This document shows positions 7,553 to 40,003 of a stretch of 64,000 nucleotides of DNA, piece by piece (position 1 is the stretch's first letter; each line of letters starts with the position of its first letter). The DNA comes from Cyanophora paradoxa CCMP329. Its lineage: Eukaryota > Plantae > Glaucophyta. The stretch lies in the NCBI GenBank assembly GCA_004431415.1, contig QPMI01000259.1:1-64000 (forward strand), written 5' to 3'. Made by a program: the position numbers and the translations under genes. Under the pieces are notes generated by a model, which was not told where the DNA came from, made no database searches, and saw only the letters and a list, made by a program, of their open reading frames with translations.

Positions 7553-10500
7553 TCAATTGGGTGTGGAAAAGGAAGGGCGTGGAAAAGCCTGGGTGTTGAA
7601 GGGTTCTGAGGCCTCGCTGTCGAATCCAGGGTTTGTTTGACGGTCAAGTCTTTTGGCCCATGACCTAAAACAAGTAACAATTAGAATACTCAATGGTTCT
7701 GCAAATTTATAATGAGATGGGATCCAAGAAAGAGTCAACCTGACAGCGTCTGCAAGCTCTGCACGATCAAATTTATCGGCGGCATTGGCCAGGTCGTAGC
7801 ACAGCTGAGGTGGTATTGTGCCATCTCTTGCTATCGCATCAAGAGTCGCCAGCAGCTCAGAAGCACGCAAATGAATGCCGCCCTCCATTCCACGTGCAAG
7901 AGACCATCGTGACAAGGCCTGAGGTGTCCTCCTCCGTTGACGTGATGCATGGGAAGGATAGCCACGAAAAAGAGCTTGGTAAGTGCCACGGTCAGCAGGT
8001 AGCCCGGCCAGGATCATTGCACGAAAGGCCCGGAGTGCCCTAACTGCATCACCACAGTGCACACATCCTCCAATAAGCTCGTTGTAAGTTGCCGTTGTAG
8101 GCAAGATACCCCGCTCTGACATTTCCCTGACAACAGCAAATGCCTTCTCCAGCTGCCTTGCAAGAGCTTGCCGTTTGACAAGTAGCGTGAAGATGACGAC
8201 GTCGGCCTTAGGTTACAAACACAAGTCAGATTTCGCAAAAAGCAAACCATCAAGCAGGGCAAAAACCTGAATGCGAGCATCCTTCATAGACTGGAACACC
8301 CGCTGAAAGCGTTCGAGATCTGATGCCTGAAGGCATGCAGACAATAACGATGCATATCTGTGTGCTCATCAGAATATAAAATGAGCAGTGAACTGGTCGC
8401 TGAGATACGAACGTTACGGCATTGGGTTTAACATCATCCTTCCTCATTTCTGCACACGATATAAGAAATGTATCGAAAAAGATTGCCACAACTCATGATG
8501 AGGCACACCGCTGTACAAGGAGAGGGCATCTCGAAGCCGCCTTGCCTTTCCGAAGCCGTCAATGAGAGTGGTGTATGTGACAACGCTAGGGTGGACTCCT
8601 GCTGTCCGCATTGAATTTAAATAGCCCTCCGCAAGACTGAGGTTTCCCTGCAGAACGGATCACGCTATTGAAGGCAAGATCATCCATTCACTGACCTTCT
8701 GTACACATGCTGATATTATGGCATTGTATGCTGTTACTGAGGGAGAAATGCCTAGATCGCACATCTCTTGCCAGAGCCTGGTTGCCTGGTTGAGCTGCAT
8801 TCGCCGACCATATGCTGCAGCGACTGGTTATTCATTATCAGGTACTGAAGGTAACTGAACGAACCACGAATCAGAACCGCATAGACAACATCATCAAGAC
8901 GGCGTCCGGCCTGCTTTGCATCTTGCAGGAGCAGCCGTGCTCTTGCCAGCTGCTCACGCTGAACACACCTGACCCGGTGTCAAGCAGAACACAGAACACA
9001 GGGGTGCAAATAGTAACCCACATTTGGAGCAAAGGGGTGAAGGTTTTCTCATTCGGCTCATGTCCTGCTGAGCACATATCTGCAAAGCTGTTAGAGCACC
9101 ACGAATGACTGGATGCGAAGGCAAACTGATGACCAGAAAGCGTTGCAAATGCTCGCTGCAGCTGGCCTGTGCGGGCATAGTGATTGATCAGGATGTTGAA
9201 GGTCACAGGGTTCGGGTGCAGCCCTTGATCATTTATGGCCTTCAATATAGCAGTCATCTGCAACTCCAAAGATCAGTACACGAATCCAGCACAATAAGGA
9301 AGAGAGCGTGTGCACCTCATCATCATCGTTAGCTCGAGAACAGGCTGACAAGAGGGCATTGAACACGACTACATCTGGCAGAATGTCATCCGACAGCATT
9401 GTCTTGAACAGGGCGAGAGCTGCACAGGACTCAGTGATTCAGTTTTGCAACGCCAAATCATCAACCACTTCTGAGGCACCGTCTGAAAGCTGGCCCAACC
9501 TCGAGTGAGCTTTGATCGCATGAGTGTAGCATCGGACATCCGGCTGCACTCCATTTCCAATCATGCGCTCGAATACCCCTAGAACCATGTTCCAGTCTCC
9601 GAGGTGCCTGGCAGTGCTCATCACTATTTCGTAGACCTTTGTACCCAACTTGCGTCCAGCGTTCTCGAGCTTCTTTATCAAATACATTGACTTCGTGATC
9701 TGCAAATAAGCAGGATATAAACAATCCACAATAAAGCAAAAAACTATTATAAGAATTTACCTGTTTCTCTGAGCAATACATTTGAACCAGAGCTGCTGTT
9801 GGGTCCTCTGAGTGTTCCAGAAGTTCTGGACCAAGCTTGTCGAGGATGCGACACGCCCTGCATCGAGAAAATGTCCGTTGCAGCAGACGTGTTGAAATTG
9901 AGATTGCGCACTCTGGAATGCTCGAACGCAGACTCTCTTCGACAAGTACAGCCAATAATCTTGTTCCAGAGTCCGAACTCAGCTCAAAGTCGGCGGGCTC
10001 ACGAATCATTGCTTCAGCAGCCTCCACAGTTAACGATGCGGAAGAGGCCAAGGCCCTCACACGAGGCACCAAACTGATTGACAGAATCACCAAAGAAGAA
10101 GCCTAAATTTTGAATTTCGCAAGGGAATGCTCACTCATGTAGGCTCTGAGGTATGTTCACCGGCGAGGATTTTTCTAAAATCAGTGTGACCGGTCCGACC
10201 CGTTGTCGGATCGCTGTGGCGACTCGTGTTAGGTCTTCGGCCGACCTGAGGAGCATGAGGAACACACATAGGTAACCCAGCGATAAGAAACTACCAGATA
10301 TCATTGCCGAAGACTGAGCTGACAGCGGCGAGACGATCACCGATGGAAACCTTGCCCGAATTGTCTATGCCAACGACAGGTCAGTAGCTGGAGATCGGCA
10401 AGGTCGCCTCGCGCACCAGCGTTGCCGCCGCTGGCGAGATCTTTGACCCACAGGCCACCTTCTCGTTCCTCTACGAGTATTCCTGCGCGCCAAGTCAACT

Positions 10501-11073
10501 CCTGGAATTGTGCGCGGAGCCCGCAAGGGCTGAAGAATCGTGGTGCAGTTCGAAGCCCTCGGTGGGCCCCTCGCGAGGCTCAATCTTACCGAGGGGTTTC
10601 TCGAGCTGCACTTCAATCAACTCTCCGAGTGCGATCTGCAGCCTGATCATGTCGACGGTGGACGTCGACGCTGGCCGGCGCCCCTCTCCAAGCATGGCGT
10701 CCTGACGAGGCGGCGGATGCTCGGCGCGCGGCGTCTCTGCGCACATGTGAGTGCTGGATGCCGCGAGGAGGCGACGACACTGACCGCCGCCGCTGCTTCT
10801 TGCGCGCGGCTCGTTCGGTCGCACGTGCGAAGGAGCGCGCGCGGCCATGCTCGGCGGTGCAAATGGGACCAAGGCACGAAAGAAGCTGATTCCCGTGTGC
10901 TGGACGCGGCACTCGCTGGCTGCAGGTCCGCACTCTGCACGCCGGGCCGCACGCCAGCCGGTCCGCGACGAACGGGTCGAGCCGGTCATGCGGCAAGCCT
11001 CCGAGACTGCGAGCGCGTGACGCGGGATCGCATCCGGTGGCGGCGCGGGGGCCACGAGGAAGGCGAGCTCCAT
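7553..11073 (-). CDS. Multi-exon pentatricopeptide repeat (PPR) protein, probably organelle-targeted
   Basis: Exons encode repeated PPR motifs (GVQPDVRCYTHAIKA, GLHPNPVTFNILINHYARTG, GVHPSVVTYTTLIDGFGKA, DVKPNAVTF, GILPTTATYNELIGGC). Stop TGA at 7553. Start MELAFLVAP at 11073 is inferred and the 5' exon structure is uncertain. Confidence 0.85.
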
Positions 11074-31238: not shown

Positions 31239-31410
31239 GACCAAGGCGACGATCAGTCTGATTATAATTAGCCGTAGAGCTATAACTTTATATAGAATAT
31301 ATAGCGCTCACTTGCATGCGCAATTGCAATCTCTCACACAGCTGCAGATAGCGCGGGATGCACATATTTAGCCGGGCGTTGACCATGGTGCCAGCAGCGG
31401 CATGTCGTGT

Positions 31411-32084
31411 TCAACCAGCAGCTTGCTCTGCAGCTGCTCGAAGCTCAGCTCGTTCTTCTGCTGCAAGCTTTTTCAAAGAGTCCAGCTCGTCCTTCCTGCG
31501 CTGCCTCTCCTGTTCCATCTTGCCTGCTTACAATGCACGCAGGAGCATGGGTAAATACACTGCAGCCTGCAACTAACCATGGAACTAGACGACGCACGGT
31601 GCTTTCTCCGGATAGCAGTCATCGCGAAGCGCCTTGCCCACTCGTCACTAAGCTCGATCTGGACGGGGGCATCGTCCGTATCTCTTTCGACGCCGTCGTC
31701 TGCGACCTCCGCGGTGCTGCCGAAGGCGGCCGGAGCTGAGGTCTCTCCGTTATATGGGAAGCTGGACGCTGGATGCGGGCATGCCGGCGGCTGCCAGAAC
31801 ACAGGCCCATGCCAGACCGACGGAGGAGGGGGCGGCGCTGCCGGCATATGGACCTCCGCAGGGGCGAACGGCGCGTGCCATCCGAAAGGCGGGCGGGCAC
31901 CAAAGGAAGGATGGCCCGCAAAGGGAGGCGACTGCGGGTGTGCAGGAGCGCCGTCGTGGAAGTCGTGCACAAACGGCGCGAGGTCGGGCGGCGGGCGGAG
32001 GCCTGGCAGCGGGAACGGTGGCAGGATGGCGCCCGGGCCGCCGAACGAGTGCGGAAAGGCGAGACTGATCCCAGTCGAGTTCAT
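31411..32084 (-). CDS. Pro-rich protein with a short C-terminal coiled coil (weak Gemin8-like motif)
   Basis: Two-exon model ...VQIELSDEWARRFAMTAIRRKHR|KMEQERQRRKDELDSLKK...AAG* with a phase-1 GT-AG intron. The family resemblance is only tentative. Confidence 0.65.
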
Positions 32085-32223
32085 GGACAGGAGCGGGGCG
32101 CCGCGGACGCGTACACGCCGACGCCGCCGGGCGCTACTCCTGAACCGAACCTTGCGTACGTATCCCGCCCCCTCCAGTCCTTGCCCGCCGCACTGGACAC
32201 TGGACCCTCACCTGGAGGACAAG

Positions 32224-32290
32224 TGCTGGACCACTGCTGGACCACTGCTGGACCACTAGTGCTGGACCACTGCTGGACCAGCTGGACCTG
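32224..32290 (+). repeat. 11-bp tandem repeat TGCTGGACCAC (~5-6 copies) in a bidirectional promoter
   Basis: Directly visible between divergent ATGs at 32084 and 32342. Confidence 0.85.
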
Positions 32291-32341
32291 AGCTGGTTTG
32301 TGGAGGGGTATACACGCGGCCGAGCGATCCGTCAACATCGC

Positions 32342-35300
32342 ATGCAAGCAGCTTGGATGCAGGATAGCTGGCTGGTAGAGCTGCGACGCGAGCCCTCGCG
32401 GCTTCGCGGAGCTGGCTTCGCGTCCCCGGCCCCCCTAGCCTTCGAGAGGGCCCAGCGAGCTCAAGCCGGTTGCGCACACCAACAGAGCAGACGAGGAGGT
32501 GCGTGCACGGAGCGCGCGCGCGCGGCTGCAGTTGAACGGCCCGCAGCTCCGCACCCAGCGATCCGCTCGCTTCGGCGTCCGACGAAAAGCAGGATCAGCT
32601 GGTCGTGCAGCATTTCCTCCGCCCCGCTGCCCTCGTTTGGTGCGCTCCACACCTGTCTCGCAACCTTAGAAGCGCAGCAGCAGTGCGATCTGACACCTCG
32701 CGTGCGCAGTGGCGACCGGCCGTCACTGGCTCGCTGCGCGGCGGGAGGAGGCATTGGTCGTCTCCGCGATCGGCCAGTACGGAGGCCCTGCAGCTCCAAA
32801 CGTGCAGCAGGACGACGAGGATGGGATCGCGCTCGAAGACGAAGACGAGCAGATCGACGACAGTGAAGGCGTGCCTCGCGGCACGCAGTGGGTTGCCGCT
32901 AGGGCGAGCGGAGATCGTACGCTGGAACGGATCATGGAGACCGGCAAGCGCGGTGACGTGGCGGGTGCGGGGCGGCCCGGAATCAGTCGTACGCGCCGTA
33001 ACCACGTCTGCCGCAGGCATCATACAAGCCGTTGAGGAGCACCGGGGGTTCCTTACCGATGTGCACATTTCGGCGGCCATGCATGTGCTGGGGAAGTTTG
33101 TCCAGCCGCACCAGCGCTCGCGCACGCCCCTGATGGAGAAAGGGTTGGATTTTCTTGCCGACAAGTTCATTCACTTCACCTCGACCTTTCGCTGTGCGCC
33201 AGCCCGCGTAAGTTTATGGTGACAGCTGACCTTGCGAGCGGTTGCAGATCGACAGCTCGCAACGTTCATCTACGGCGTACGTACAGAACCCCGACCCCTT
33301 CCCGCGTGATCCGCGCACATACGCGTGGCAGTGTGCGCTGGCAGGCTACCAGAACCGCGCTGTGCTGGATCTGGCGGCCGCACGGGCTATCGCCTCGATC
33401 CACCTTTTCCCTCCCCAGAACGTCTCTATGCTCATGTGGGGCTGTGCAAAGTTGAACTACAGGTACGCGGTGTCGGCCCCGCTAGAGCGCCAACACCGAC
33501 AGCGGGCGGAGCGCAGGAACGCGGAGCTTCTGCGGGCTGTGGCATCTGAAGTGAGGACGCGTGTCGCGAAAGACTTCACCCCACAGGTTCGCCTCCGCTC
33601 TCCCGTGCCGGACCACGCTGGCTCAGGCCACCCGACAGGGACTCGCCAACACAGCCTTCGGCTTTTCGAAGCTGCGACACGCGGACGCCGAGATGTGGCA
33701 GGCCCTCGCCGCCCGCACAGTGCGCGCAGGCGGCGGTCAGCCTTGTGCGGGGCACGACAGACGCCGGGTGCAGATCGAGATGAGCAAGCAGTTGAATGGG
33801 CAGGAATTGAGCATGCTCGCCTTCGCGTTTTCAGCCATGCAGGCGCGCCGTCCCACGCCCTCTCAAACCCAGCTGCGGGACGAGCAGGAGCGACAGATGC
33901 GGGACGAGACGCTCTTCGAGGCGATTGCGGTCGCCGGTCGGAAAATGCTCCACGACTCCCTCACCGGATTTCAAATGGCAGTCCTTTCCCGCGCCTTCGG
34001 CGAACTCGGTGCAGAATATTTCCATCGTGGCATATGCTGGCGCAGTCCGAGCCCTGCACAGGGCTGCGCAATGAACCTCTGTTCGCAACGATGGCGTCAC
34101 TAGCCCCCGCGCGCATCGGGGAGCTCAGCTCGGACGGCCTCGCGCAGCTTGCCCGCGGCTACGGCCTCGTCGGCATCCGACCTCGCAACCTCTTCAAGGT
34201 AGGCGGGCCCTGAATTGCATAGCGCCGCTAACTCCAACGACAGCTGATCTCCGATCGAGCTCTGGAGGTCCTTCCGCATGCCACGCCCGAGGAGATCTGC
34301 CATCTCGCCCAGGCTTTTTCCCAGGTGCCTTTCTGTCTCGCGTATTGAGTGCCTCGCGGTTCCTGAGCAAGGCATTTAACACGCATCATTCGCCCTCAGG
34401 TCCACGTGAAGGTGCAGTCCGCTACTCTGCTCAAACAGGCGTTACCCATTCCGCGCCGCGGCGACAGGACGAGGCGCTGTACAGGGCGATCACGGAAACG
34501 GTAGTTGGTCGTCAACTGCAAGGCTTCACGGCGCGGCAGGTTGCGGACCTCGCCATGTCCTTCGGCCGTGCCGCCATCCCGGATCGTCGGCTTTTCCGTG
34601 CAATCGCGTCCTGGACCATCGACAACATCTCCCGTCTTTCGGAGGACGACATCGCTACCGTGTGTCTGCCCCCTTCCATTCTCATCGTCGCCTTATCCGC
34701 TCCCGGCAGATTATACGTGGTTTCAGCGCGACCTCCGTACGAGACGACGCTCTTCTGCGTGCTGTCGCTGAAAACTGCCTCGGCGAACGTGGATTTGATC
34801 GTTTTCAGGTGTGCCCCGTCATTCACGAGGTACCTTGCGGCCGCTTAGCCTGTGCAGGCCGACACACTAGCCGACTTGTTATGGGCATTTGCCAACGCGG
34901 GCGTGCGGGATGAATCGATTTTCCGCGCAGCTGCTGCTTCCATGATGCCCAAGGTCGGATTTGTGTCTGCCCATTCGAAAGACATCTCACTTGTTGGAGC
35001 AGGTTCCACAGCTGAGCATATCGGGCCTTTGCGACACATTTACGGGTGTGTGGCTTGGATTCGCCATGATCTAGGAGATAACGTGGCACTGCAGCGTTCG
35101 CATCGATGACGGCGGGCTTGCACACGGATGAAGAAGCCTGGGCCCTTGCACTCTATGCTGCTCTCACTGAACAGCTCCTCACTCCGGGGCCCCGCGGCAC
35201 CCTCAGGGTATGTACCCCCCATCCCTTACTCTGACACCTTCCCCCTCCTTGTTCCCACTTCAACTTCGAGATTTCTTACTGATCGAGGGGGGCGCAGGTG

Positions 35301-37120
35301 GAACAGCTGACACACAGGCAGGCAGCGACACTAGTTTCCTCCTGCCGCCAGGCCATGTACGATGACCCAAGACTTCTTCAGGTAGCCGCCCCCCCCCCCC
35401 CTCCCCCCCCCCCCCCCCCCCCCCCCCGCGCACTCCAGCCCCTCCCGTCGCCAAACTGCAATCGCCTTTCTGCAGGCACTTCTCCGTTTTGCACTTCGCA
35501 CTGTTCGGGATCTTCAGGTTGGAGATCGTCTGCTTTCAAGGTCCCCCGCATTCCGCTCATTCATATGCAGGCCTCGTATCTTGCGCAATTTGTCCTCGCA
35601 TTTGCATCGCTGCAAATCGACTGTGCGGCGCTTCTCGCCCACATCCCTCAGGCAAGCTCCCATAGCGTAAGCCAAACCTTGCAAAACCTCTCACAAGCAC
35701 CCCAGGGCATCAAATTTTTCCGCTCTATGCACGACTTTTCCAATCTGGTTCGTGCTCATTTTTGCTCATTCGCTTTTTTTGCATATACTTATGACAGTGC
35801 AAAGGTGTACGGTCTAGTAAGCGTTGGTCGGACAGACCTTTTGCAATATGTCATCCCGAATCTTGAGGATACGTCGAGGCGATTTGGAGGCATTCCACAG
35901 TGTTTGTGTCCCCTCCTTCTACACTCTTACAGTCCGTCCTTGCAGGCATGACTCAGGAGGAGTGCTCTCAACTAAACCTTGTATTCCTTGCCATTCGGAC
36001 GGAAGCTCCAGAGCTTCTCAGTTTGGTACCCGATCAACTGCGTGGCCGCATCGAGCGCGAGCACCGTCACAAGCTACGGTCCCTCGTTAGTCCCTTGCCC
36101 CGCAACCTGCAATCATTTGGGGTATGTAATGCTTCTCACGGCAGGAGCACATGCCTCGCCCTTCAGCTCTCCATCGTGCTGTCTCTTGGATTCTTCATAA
36201 TGTGAGTAAACTTGTTGCATGCATTCTCTGTTTTACGTTAATGTTGACTGCAGGAAATGGGCGCCGCCTTCGAAGAAGAGTACCTGGTTGCGGGCAAGTG
36301 TCATTTGCCCTGATGTGATTGCATCATGTTCTTGCTGATCTCTGTGAAGGGGCGTACCACGTGGATATTGCTTTTCCTGAGGAGCGGATCGCCCTGGAGG
36401 TCACATGTGCATGAACGCTTCCATTTTCAAACCTCACGCCCATGCAGGTAGACGGCCCTGCACACCATCTGAAGGCACTTGTTCAAGAGCCAGGCCGCCC
36501 AGGGGCTAGTGATGTGCCTCCATCAACCCAGATCGCAGGTGTCGCAACGCTTTGATGGATCAACCGTTCTCAAACAGCGTCTCCTTCGCAACTTGGGCTG
36601 GAAGGTGCAGGATTCGTTCACTCTATGGCTCACATTGAACATGCAACGAAGAGCTGCAGGTCGTGCATGTGTCTTATGTGGAATGGCTTCGGCTAGAGTC
36701 TAATGAAGAGAAACGTGTTCATTTGGAGGGAATCCTCCGGTTCGGCTACATTTGCTGTGCTCTGGTCTTGCATATCTGGTCTAAATTTTAACGTGCCAGG
36801 CCGGTTCTCTATGAGGATGAGAGTGCCCGTCCCACCGAGGAGGTTCTTTCCTTTGGATACTGCAACTCAATCTGCCTTGAATATTCCTGCAGGCATACCG
36901 TGCCAAGCCATCCCAGATCCGAGCACGTTCCACGCACAGGTCCGTGCCGCTGTCACTGCCGATCTGGAATCGGCGTTTGACACAAGCCAGGCCGTCGGAG
37001 CTGCGATCATGCCCCTTCTGTGGCAACCTCTTCCACCAAAGAGGCTTAGGGGCCCACCAGCGGTGGTGCAAGGTGCGATCGTCAAGATCGGACGACACTA
37101 CCACGACGTCGATGTCGTGA
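32342..37120 (+). CDS. Helical-repeat (OPR/HPR/FASTK-like) RAP-domain RNA-binding protein with a C-terminal C2HC finger
   Basis: ~37-38-aa repeats (FPPQNVSMLMWGCAKL, FTPQGLANTAFGFSKL, LNGQELSMLAFAFSAM). RAP motif YHVDIAFPEERIALEVDGPAH...TVLKQRLLRNLGWKVVHVSYVEW. Last exon encodes CPFCGNLFHQRGLGAHQRWC. Start is uncertain. Confidence 0.85.
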
Positions 37121-37372
37121 ACGATATGCACCGAGGCCACATACAATGACGTGTCGTTTTAATGAATATGCACGTGTCCCACGGTTTCCCATCGTGCGTA
37201 CAGGTGCACATCTAAAACGACTGCTGCACACGCCCCAGTGATCGCAAGTCCCCCCCACTTGAAATTGCCCGGTCTGAAGGATGGTGGGTTACGACCCAGA
37301 AAGGGAAGCTAACTGCCACCTCGGGAGGGCGTGTAGCGAGTCGGGGGCACGGACAACGCAGGGCAAAACAGC

Positions 37373-38200
37373 TTAGCGCTTGCCAGGAACCGGCTTGCTC
37401 TTGGCGGGCTTGGGCTGCTTGATCTTAGGCTGGTCCTTCTTGCCAGCCGCCGCGGTAGTAGTGGTCTTCGCGGCCTTCTTCGCGGCCTGCTTCTGCTTGT
37501 TGCGCTCCTTGACCTCGCTAAGCACAGATGACATGAGCAAAGGGTGAAGCCGCCAAAACTGAATGGCGCACCGGAGGGCAGCCTCGCGGGCGGCAGCGCG
37601 CTGCTCGGGCTTCTGGCCCCGCTTCTGCTTGATCACATCCAGAGAGGCACCGACGATGGCGCGCTGGACCTTCGTGGTACGGACGCGGCGCTTCTTCTGC
37701 ACCTCCTCCTGGTGGCCCTTCTTGTGCAGGCGGCGGTAGAGCTGGGTCCAGTTGAGCTTGCGGGGGTTGCGCTTCATCTGGAACGACGCCTCGCACTTCG
37801 AGCTCACGAACATGAAGGACTGAGACGTCGCGGTTAGCCAGCGCAGCAGCCATTGCCGCAATTGCTTCCCGGGCAGATAAAGGACCCCCAGCCATGTAAG
37901 CGCACCCGGTTGTCCGCGCGGACGAACTTCATGCCATGGCCTGCTAGCGAGTTCAGGCGCGCCAGAGAAAGAGGTGCGACACACGCACCCGGGTAGATCT
38001 TGTACCCGCTGAAGTAGCAGGTCTCTGTCCTGGTGCGCGAGAAGGATCAGCACAGCATTCGCGGACCGAAACTGCACTGCGATCCCGGAAGCCCCGTGCG
38101 TAGCCATAGAGCGGGGCAGCATCTCTGAAACAGAGATGTGCACAGCACAAAGAGAGCAGGCGGCCCAGTGAGCTGGGCGATAGACGCACTTGATCACCAT
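37373..38200 (-). CDS. RPL24: 60S ribosomal protein eL24
   Basis: Spliced [64 protein letters not shown]...[16 protein letters not shown], with a K/A-rich tail. Confidence 0.96.
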
Positions 38201-38516
38201 CTTGGCGTGCCCTGCGCGAGTCGCGCGGCGTCAGATCAACGCGATCTTACAATCGCTTCAATGCGGAGGCGACCCCGGCAGGCGCTCTTCCCGCGAGCAG
38301 CTCCAGCTGCTGGCGCACCTTTCCCTCCCTTGTGCGTACCCCACCAACCTCGACGCCACTATACCCCCCGGGCCTTCGGCGCTGCTCCGCCCGCGTTCGC
38401 GCCGCCAGCAGCACCAGCAGCAGCAGCAGTAGCTAGCACAGCAGCAGTGTAGCTCGTCTCCTAAGCTCGAATCCCCCTTCAAGCGCGGACCCGCAGGCTG
38501 GCGGTGAAAACAAGAC

Positions 38517-39236
38517 ATGCGGTGCGCTGGCCAGCGCGCGCTCTTTTTTTAGTCTTTGGGCTTGTTGATGCGATAAGCGGGGGCTCCCGATCGCGCTCCG
38601 GCTGCGCGCTGCCTGGTTGCGCGACTCTGATCCTGAGTGCATGCAGGATTGAGAGATGTTATTTCTGCTCGGGCCCGGTGTATCCTGGGCACGGGAGCTG
38701 CTTCGTACGCAATGATAGCAAAGTACGCGTCTTTTTGCCTCTACGCTCGCGATCGTTGTCTGAGAGCCGCGCCGCTCGTAGATGTTCCGCTTCTGCAGAT
38801 CAAAGTGCAGGAAGAACTTCGAAATGAAACGCAATCCAAGGAAGGTGGCTTGGACGAAGGCGTTTAGGAAAGCGAACGGCAAGGAGATGGCCACCGACAC
38901 GACGTTTGATTTCGAGAAGCGGCGCAACAGGCTTCCGAAGTATGACCGGGAGCTCATGATCAACACAATTCGGGCCATGAAGCGCGTGTCCGAGGTCAAG
39001 GAAAAACGCGAGAAGATCTACTACGCGAACCGGTGCATTAGCTTATGCCCCTGTCCCACTTCGTCTGACGAGGAGCCTTTTCCAGCATGAAAGCAACGAA
39101 ATCGAAAGAGAAGAAAGAGGCGAGGCAGGAGCTCGAGCAAGGGTTGGATCTCATCGCCCTCCCCACCAAACGGAAGCAGAAGATTGGCAAGAAGGCTCCC
39201 GAGGAGGCTGCGGCTATGGCATTGGAAGACGATTAA
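38517..39236 (+). CDS. RLP24: Ribosome biogenesis protein RLP24 (eL24-like)
   Basis: Spliced [27 protein letters not shown]|[56 protein letters not shown]; ends ALEDD*. Confidence 0.95.
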
Positions 39237-39614
39237 TTCCTGGCAAGCTCTCGACTGCCGACTCCTGCTCCAGCTGCAGTATTTTTCTCGTAGATTGTCA
39301 CCCATATTCAACCTAAATCACCTATGTGTTTCAACTTCTCTAAGCTGCTATACCAAGCATCCATTACTACAGCCTCAGGATTGATACCTCTATGTTGAGC
39401 CTATGCGCATTTGCTCTTTCTAAGCTACGGGCGCGGCCGGACCTCCTACCTCAGCGCTTTAACTGTACCCGTGCTGTTTGGGTGAGAGCGTAACCCGCAG
39501 GGACTGGTGCTCTGATGGAAAAAAGGGAATCGGAGCCGAGCCTAGCTACGAGCCGAGCAGGCGCTTCGCGTCCACGCCTGTGCCGTAGCGGATGAAGATG
39601 CTCCTGCGAGAATT

Positions 39615-39866
39615 CGAAAATTGGACGAAAGTTGGACGAAAGTTGGACGAAAGTTGCACGAAAGTTGGCGAAAGTTGGACGAAAGTTGGACGAAAGCTGG
39701 ACGAAAGTTGGCGAAAGTTGGACGAAAGTTGGACGAAAGTTGGACGTCGTAATCGCAACGTTAACTTGGTAACTCTGATTCCGATCGTAATCGCAACTCT
39801 GATTCCGATCGTAATCGCAACTCTGATTCCGATCGTAATCGCAACTCTGATTCCGATCGTAATCGC
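39615..39866 (+). repeat. Compound minisatellite: 11-bp AAAGTTGGACG (~12 copies), then 24-bp AACTCTGATTCCGATCGTAATCGC x4
   Basis: Directly visible; no spacers between units. Confidence 0.95.
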
Positions 39867-40003
39867 AACCGATCGGGAACACGATAAACAACCAGAAACG
39901 GAGAAGTCAACTTTACTTAATACGCGTACGGTGAAGGTACTTTCCAATATTCTGCTTTCCAAATAACTAGTAGGTTAGCGTCTATTTGGAGCTTCACTGA
40001 TGC

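Follow-up and report, generated by a model that had tools for sequence, protein, structure and literature searches.

The genes for ribosomal protein eL24 (RPL24) and for its paralogue RLP24 lie head-to-head in the Cyanophora paradoxa window, by which we mean the whole stretch of 64,000 nucleotides that was analysed. The two start codons are found at positions 38200 (minus strand) and 38517 (plus strand) and are separated by an interval of exactly 316 bp (38201–38516), and the outer coordinates of the pair, 37373 and 39236, are the stop-codon ends of the eL24 and RLP24 genes, respectively. Introns of 160, 48, 86 and 54 nt interrupt eL24 and introns of 125, 59 and 53 nt interrupt RLP24; all of them carry GT and AG at their ends. 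A word-index search returned two public proteins with 100% identity, tig00001093_g6884 (P0121, 159 aa) and tig00001093_g6885 (P0001, 160 aa). Upon spliced mapping onto the window, P0121 (eL24) and P0001 (RLP24) fit the exon models exactly, which shows that the two genes were already neighbours in the public gene set. An earlier note, made from the letters of this DNA, had described divergent start codons 316 bp apart, and the sequence, the exon models and the public models g6884 and g6885 all bear this out. The features of the locus are given below, with transcript limits taken from assembled contigs of three RNA runs (X1, X3 and X7).

37286–37372, minus strand: 3' UTR of eL24; its extent is the reach of the RNA contigs (X1 and X7 contigs begin at 37286–37287)
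37373–38200, minus strand: coding region of eL24 (RPL24), 5 exons, 480 nt, 159 aa
38200–38190, 38029–37989, 37940–37906, 37819–37572 and 37517–37373 (with stop), minus strand: exons of eL24
38201–38516, no strand: ATG-to-ATG interval, 316 bp, 66% G+C, comprising at least 10 nt of eL24 5' UTR, at least 150 nt of RLP24 5' UTR and, between the two, an untranscribed core
38211–38354, no strand: largest possible untranscribed core of the bidirectional promoter, by RNA-contig ends
38406–38447, plus strand: CAG-rich tract, inside the RLP24 5' UTR and covered by RNA contigs
38517–39236, plus strand: coding region of RLP24, 4 exons, 160 aa
38517–38521, 38647–38722, 38782–39032 and 39086–39236 (with stop), plus strand: exons of RLP24
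39237–39322, plus strand: 3' UTR of RLP24; its extent is the reach of RNA contigs in X1 and X3

Identity of the two L24e proteins

In yeast and human, respectively, Rlp24 and RSL24D1 are swapped for eL24 on the cytoplasmic pre-60S by Drg1/SPATA5. The Rlp24 placeholder and eL24 are exchanged at one ribosomal site, according to two papers (PMC5425277, PMC12019325). When the Cyanophora proteins were compared, exon by exon, with protein chains in the PDB, eL24 exon 4 scored up to 97 bits against the eL24 chains of solved ribosomes but only 35 bits against Rlp24. Conversely, for RLP24 exon 3 the Rlp24/RSL24D1 chains found in pre-60S structures scored 102 bits, compared with 32 bits for eL24. Whole-protein steps were carried out with P0001 and P0121. 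Both proteins contain the Ribosomal_L24e domain (Pfam PF01246), which scored 111 bits over residues 4–67 of eL24 (cut-off 27) and 110.9 bits over residues 1–65 of RLP24. RLP24 retains four N-terminal cysteines (C6, C9, C32 and C36), in columns that are invariant or nearly so in our alignment (A1). Only two cysteines, C8 and C38, are retained in eL24, where part of the archaeal four-cysteine motif has been lost. This pattern, four cysteines in RLP24 versus two in eL24, has been described for both families (PMC8481954). The C-terminal tail of RLP24 is charged and comprises about 50 residues, with a putative role in Drg1/SPATA5 recruitment.

We then placed both proteins in a maximum-likelihood tree of 17 eL24 and 17 RLP24 sequences. 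The eL24 and RLP24 clades split at 100/100 support, the joining branch measures about 4.8 changes per site, and each Cyanophora protein falls inside the clade of its own family. The nearest labelled relative of the eL24 protein belongs to another glaucophyte, Cyanoptyche (84% identity), and the nearest homologues (P0002, P0122 and P0138) are known as transcripts only. On these sequence comparisons, we are certain that the minus-strand gene is eL24 and that the plus-strand gene is RLP24, and both are, by the same comparisons, ancient orthologues of their respective families. The names RPL24 and RLP24 assigned in the earlier note are thus confirmed by the PDB-chain scores, PF01246, the cysteines and the tree.

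Two public models of other species appear to be faulty. The eL24 model of Planoprotostelium (P0147, 258 aa; L090:10001–11218) starts with about 100 extra N-terminal residues that have no counterpart in other eL24 proteins, and its first two exons are probably mis-called. In the RLP24 model of Rhodosorus (P0068; L001:10001–10574), a non-homologous N-terminus of about 27 residues replaces the conserved cysteine motif, probably because an intron was missed in annotation.

Transcription and the interval between the genes

Transcription of the pair was followed in the three RNA runs, which come from three studies, and compared with one DNA run of 2012, all in the form of assembled contigs. Fourteen runs that we guessed to be RNA contained about half of the words sampled from the stretch, as expected for spliced RNA, and two unlabelled runs of 2012 contained all or nearly all. 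All seven introns (four in eL24 and three in RLP24) were seen as joints in RNA contigs, and none of the seven in the DNA run. The eL24 joints fall at 37517/37572, 37819/37906, 37939/37988 and 38028/38189; those of RLP24 were found in all three studies. A search of Rfam over positions 36800–39800 gave a single match, to a bacterial sRNA model below threshold (E = 0.61), and no intronic snoRNA or known RNA.

These data bear on whether the pair exists at all. It could be produced by mis-assembly, include a pseudogene or retrocopy, or consist of recent duplicates that gene conversion has kept alike. In the 2012 DNA run, a 3977-nt contig is colinear with positions 37000–39436 without a single difference, and since it comes from an independent data set and crosses the junction, the junction is not an assembly artefact; mis-assembly was rejected on this ground. 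A retrocopy was rejected because RNA contigs from three studies show splicing of introns in both genes. Finally, the tree places each gene in its own ancient clade, across the long branch separating the two families, so that the pair is neither a recent tandem duplication nor a product of gene conversion. Our analysis found no evidence in favour of any such artefact, and we give this explanation almost no credence.

The RNA contigs also delimit the interval from which both genes are transcribed. Depending on the study, RLP24 contigs begin at 38355, 38363 or 38367; two of them break at a run of C residues (38364–38369), so the RLP24 start may sit somewhat further upstream. On the other side, an eL24 contig reaches about position 38210. 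Between them, positions 38218–38304 are covered by no RNA contig (depth 0 in X1, X3 and X7). The gap between the divergent transcripts is therefore about 87–145 bp as judged by RNA contigs, whose ends are contig ends and not mapped 5' ends. With start points at most about 145 bp apart, both core promoters must fall in one short region. Bidirectional promoters are defined by divergent genes with start sites less than 1 kb apart, and the contig ends at about 38210 and 38355 lie within this distance. At the resolution of contigs, a compact shared bidirectional promoter region is real, and the short shared promoter proposed in the earlier note is in this respect substantiated by the gap in the RNA contigs.

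The same note had placed a CAG-rich tract between the two start codons. The tract itself is real (38406–38447), with 10 CAG triplets within positions 38400–38450, and is the sole tract of that density in the 64-kb window. It is not situated between the transcripts, however: because the RNA contigs start at 38355–38367, it belongs to the transcribed 5' UTR of RLP24.

The two directions of the promoter are probably unequal. GC3 is 0.91 in eL24 versus 0.74 in RLP24, and codon bias is much stronger in eL24. RNA contig depth is also far higher for eL24 than for RLP24, although contig depth is not suited to ranking genes. From codon bias and contig depth, the promoter is probably asymmetric, with eL24 on the stronger side. 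We infer that regulation of the two genes may be shared.

A repeat search over 37300–39300 returned only short matches at about the level of chance and no mirror symmetry around the promoter. A 15-nt mirror match, 93% complementary, occurs at the two stop codons (37375–37389 and 39237–39251): its first arm covers the final codons of eL24, and its second follows the stop codon of RLP24 immediately. It is probably a coincidence, as about 0.2–0.5 such matches are expected by chance in the stretch.

On the RLP24 side, the pair is bordered by a very high-copy element (39407–39970) whose start is about 85 bp beyond the 3' end of RLP24. The element contains tandem arrays of an 11-nt unit (39615–39746) and of a 24-nt unit (39771–39869), its DNA word depth is about 19,000 compared to about 44 in the single-copy DNA on its flanks, and it interrupts many contigs. 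On the eL24 side, a run of long plus-strand ORFs occupies 31400–37190, with RNA contigs ending at 37092–37191. This region is probably one large gene convergent with eL24, with about 95 bp between the 3' ends. A single RNA contig (X3) spans the ORF region together with eL24. Pfam searches with ten neighbouring long ORFs gave no match, and the six ORFs scanned from 31400–37190 had none.

Intron positions and linkage in other eukaryotes

The introns of eight genes from five major groups were mapped exactly and placed on one alignment. These were the eL24 genes of Cyanophora, Planoprotostelium, Phlyctochytrium and Atheta and the RLP24 genes of Cyanophora, Pocillopora, Rhizophagus and Heterostelium (window positions 37906–38200 and 38517–38782; loci L086, L087, L089, L090, L091 and L092). 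One phase-0 intron lies at the same alignment column in all eight genes, separating R29 from S30 in Cyanophora eL24 and K27 from M28 in RLP24. A phase-2 intron near the start codon interrupts the codon that lies two positions ahead of the first conserved glutamate (eL24 K4, equivalent to RLP24 R2); every one of the four eL24 genes has it, as does Cyanophora RLP24. A third intron, also of phase 2, splits an arginine codon, R112 of eL24 in two species and R111 of RLP24 in three; its sites are two alignment columns apart between the families, in a helix that is weakly alignable. Judging from these positions, the shared introns probably predate the duplication on the eukaryotic stem. Introns shared between proto-eukaryotic paralogues have been described in general by Vosseberg et al. 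2022, whose duplication set includes the eL24/RLP24 pair (PMC9120149). The phase-0 and phase-2 introns that eL24 and RLP24 have in common conform to that description, and they add one clean example to the evidence for introns before stem-eukaryote duplications.

We extended the comparison to gene order by surveying 95 loci, 92 anchored on RLP24 and 3 on eL24, with flanks of up to 10 kb; the genomes sampled lay outside the glaucophytes. A metagenome scan with an alignment of 24 RLP24 proteins contributed 80 of the loci, flanked by up to 10 kb in either direction. RLP24 loci from named genomes were those of the red alga Rhodosorus marinus, the coral Pocillopora, the fungus Rhizophagus, the oomycete Phytophthora and the amoebozoan Heterostelium. 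Further RLP24 loci came from a transcript contig (P0002), a widespread marine environmental lineage (P0037), a diatom-like assembly and one other assembly. The eL24-anchored loci were those of Planoprotostelium, Phlyctochytrium and Atheta. Among the first 89 RLP24 loci, 37 had at least 2 kb upstream, representing about 20–23 distinct lineages; the last three had 10 kb on either side of the gene. Small eukaryotes with few introns are over-represented in the metagenome survey.

When exon peptides of eL24 and RLP24 were searched by tblastn over all 95 loci, a second gene of the L24e family was found in none of them within flanks of up to 10 kb. The sole extra match, in the coral, was to a different exon of the anchoring RLP24 gene. 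None of the named genomes (Rhodosorus, Pocillopora, Rhizophagus, Phytophthora, Heterostelium, Planoprotostelium, Phlyctochytrium and Atheta) showed linkage within the flanks searched, and this synteny survey disclosed RPL24/RLP24 linkage nowhere outside Cyanophora. A conserved gene pair is recognised by the same adjacency in other lineages; here that adjacency occurred at none of the loci sampled outside the glaucophytes. Published gene order is in line with this result. In a survey of 64 species, the conserved divergent partner of RLP24 in ascomycetes is TIM14 and not RPL24, and the table of the most conserved gene pairs among the 64 eukaryotes includes no RPL24/RLP24 pair (PMC2871058). A literature search found no paper reporting a head-to-head arrangement of eL24 and RLP24.

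In the survey, RLP24 also turned up in a further short divergent arrangement with a gene related to the ribosome. In Rhizophagus irregularis (L087), RLP24 (10001–10671, plus strand) is head-to-head with a gene for a 128-aa protein of the Ribosomal_L7Ae family (9069–9688, minus strand), the called genes being about 310 bp apart.

Origin of the adjacency and comparison with known systems

The earlier note had offered two origins for the pair, a relic of the ancestral duplication or a selected bidirectional promoter. For the adjacency to be a relic, an intron-bearing L24e gene of the archaeal type would have been duplicated in inverted orientation on the eukaryotic stem, and the linkage would have been kept in glaucophytes by the shared promoter. 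The dating of the duplication to the eukaryotic stem (PMC8481954) fits such a history, as does the inclusion of COG2075, with KOG1722 and KOG1723, in the pre-LECA duplication set (PMC9120149). The intron positions and phases common to the paralogues likewise fit a duplication at the DNA level of a gene that already bore introns. However, these introns are found in both families, also in species where the genes are unlinked, and thus have no bearing on whether linkage was retained. The survey speaks against the relic, since linkage was lacking at all sampled loci, which cover at least five other major eukaryotic groups, and the ascomycete partner of RLP24 is TIM14 (PMC2871058). Retention in a single lineage for more than 1 billion years would moreover require repeated independent losses everywhere else. 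The relic origin is not supported by our results, and we consider it very improbable. If it were true, the pair would be the footprint of the duplication that made the first ribosomal placeholder.

Selection for coupling is the main rival reading, though we still regard it as unlikely. Here, the genes would have come together secondarily and selection would have preserved the arrangement in glaucophytes, because one bidirectional promoter links how much placeholder is made to how much of its replacement is made. Several observations are consistent with this, namely the close start points, the functional link between products that are exchanged at one ribosomal site (PMC5425277 and PMC12019325) and the over-representation of functionally related genes, ribosomal protein pairs among them, in conserved divergent pairs (PMC2871058). 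The low a priori probability that this pair arose by chance points in the same direction: under random gene order, it would be about 1/(2 × gene number). C. paradoxa has about 25,000 genes, which gives about 2e-5, so that pure chance is a priori unlikely for this specific pair. We do not find this argument compelling, as it is weakened by the very many windows scanned and by the fact that the scan would have picked out any one of several placeholder/protein pairs. Against coupling, conservation was seen at none of the loci sampled outside the glaucophytes, and the strong differences in codon bias and in rough contig depth indicate that the outputs of the two genes are not matched one to one. 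Furthermore, ribosomal protein and ribosome-biogenesis genes are co-regulated with growth elsewhere in eukaryotes while being unlinked.

Altogether, we infer that the adjacency arose by a secondary, lineage-specific juxtaposition that left the two genes with one shared short promoter region, and we hold this to be likely, rather than linkage kept since the duplication on the eukaryotic stem. The juxtaposition would have been neutral or only mildly favoured. In this preferred reading, eL24 and RLP24 are two genuine, spliced and expressed single genes of a glaucophyte that are transcribed divergently, and both now use one short region acting as a compact, probably asymmetric bidirectional promoter. 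As it stands, the pair is a single-genome curiosity, and its interest is modest unless it is kept in other glaucophytes. If it were conserved among them, it would offer a natural example of a cell coupling the production of an assembly placeholder to that of its replacement, and also a compact bidirectional promoter (about 150 bp) for an alga with few genetic tools.

To our knowledge, the RPL24 and RLP24 genes are unlinked in yeast, human and Arabidopsis, whereas in Cyanophora they stand head-to-head, 316 bp apart. At the level of the proteins there is no such difference: both Cyanophora proteins are clear orthologues of yeast Rlp24/human RSL24D1 and of eL24 (Rpl24), with the L24e domain and the cysteine pattern in common and with similar lengths. 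Public annotation already includes both genes, and short promoters shared by divergent genes of the translation machinery are a familiar arrangement. The ribosomal pairs S16/L13 and L21/S9 and the ascomycete pair RLP24/TIM14 (PMC2871058) likewise consist of divergent, functionally related translation-machinery genes separated by a short intergenic distance. Those pairs are conserved in many species, whereas the eL24/RLP24 pair is found in one genome and its members are paralogues of each other. The histone pairs H2A–H2B and H3–H4 resemble the Cyanophora pair in that two partners of one assembly are placed on a short shared promoter. Histone partners, however, are needed in equal amounts, whereas eL24 is a bulk structural protein and RLP24 is recycled, and codon bias suggests that the output of the two Cyanophora genes is very unequal.
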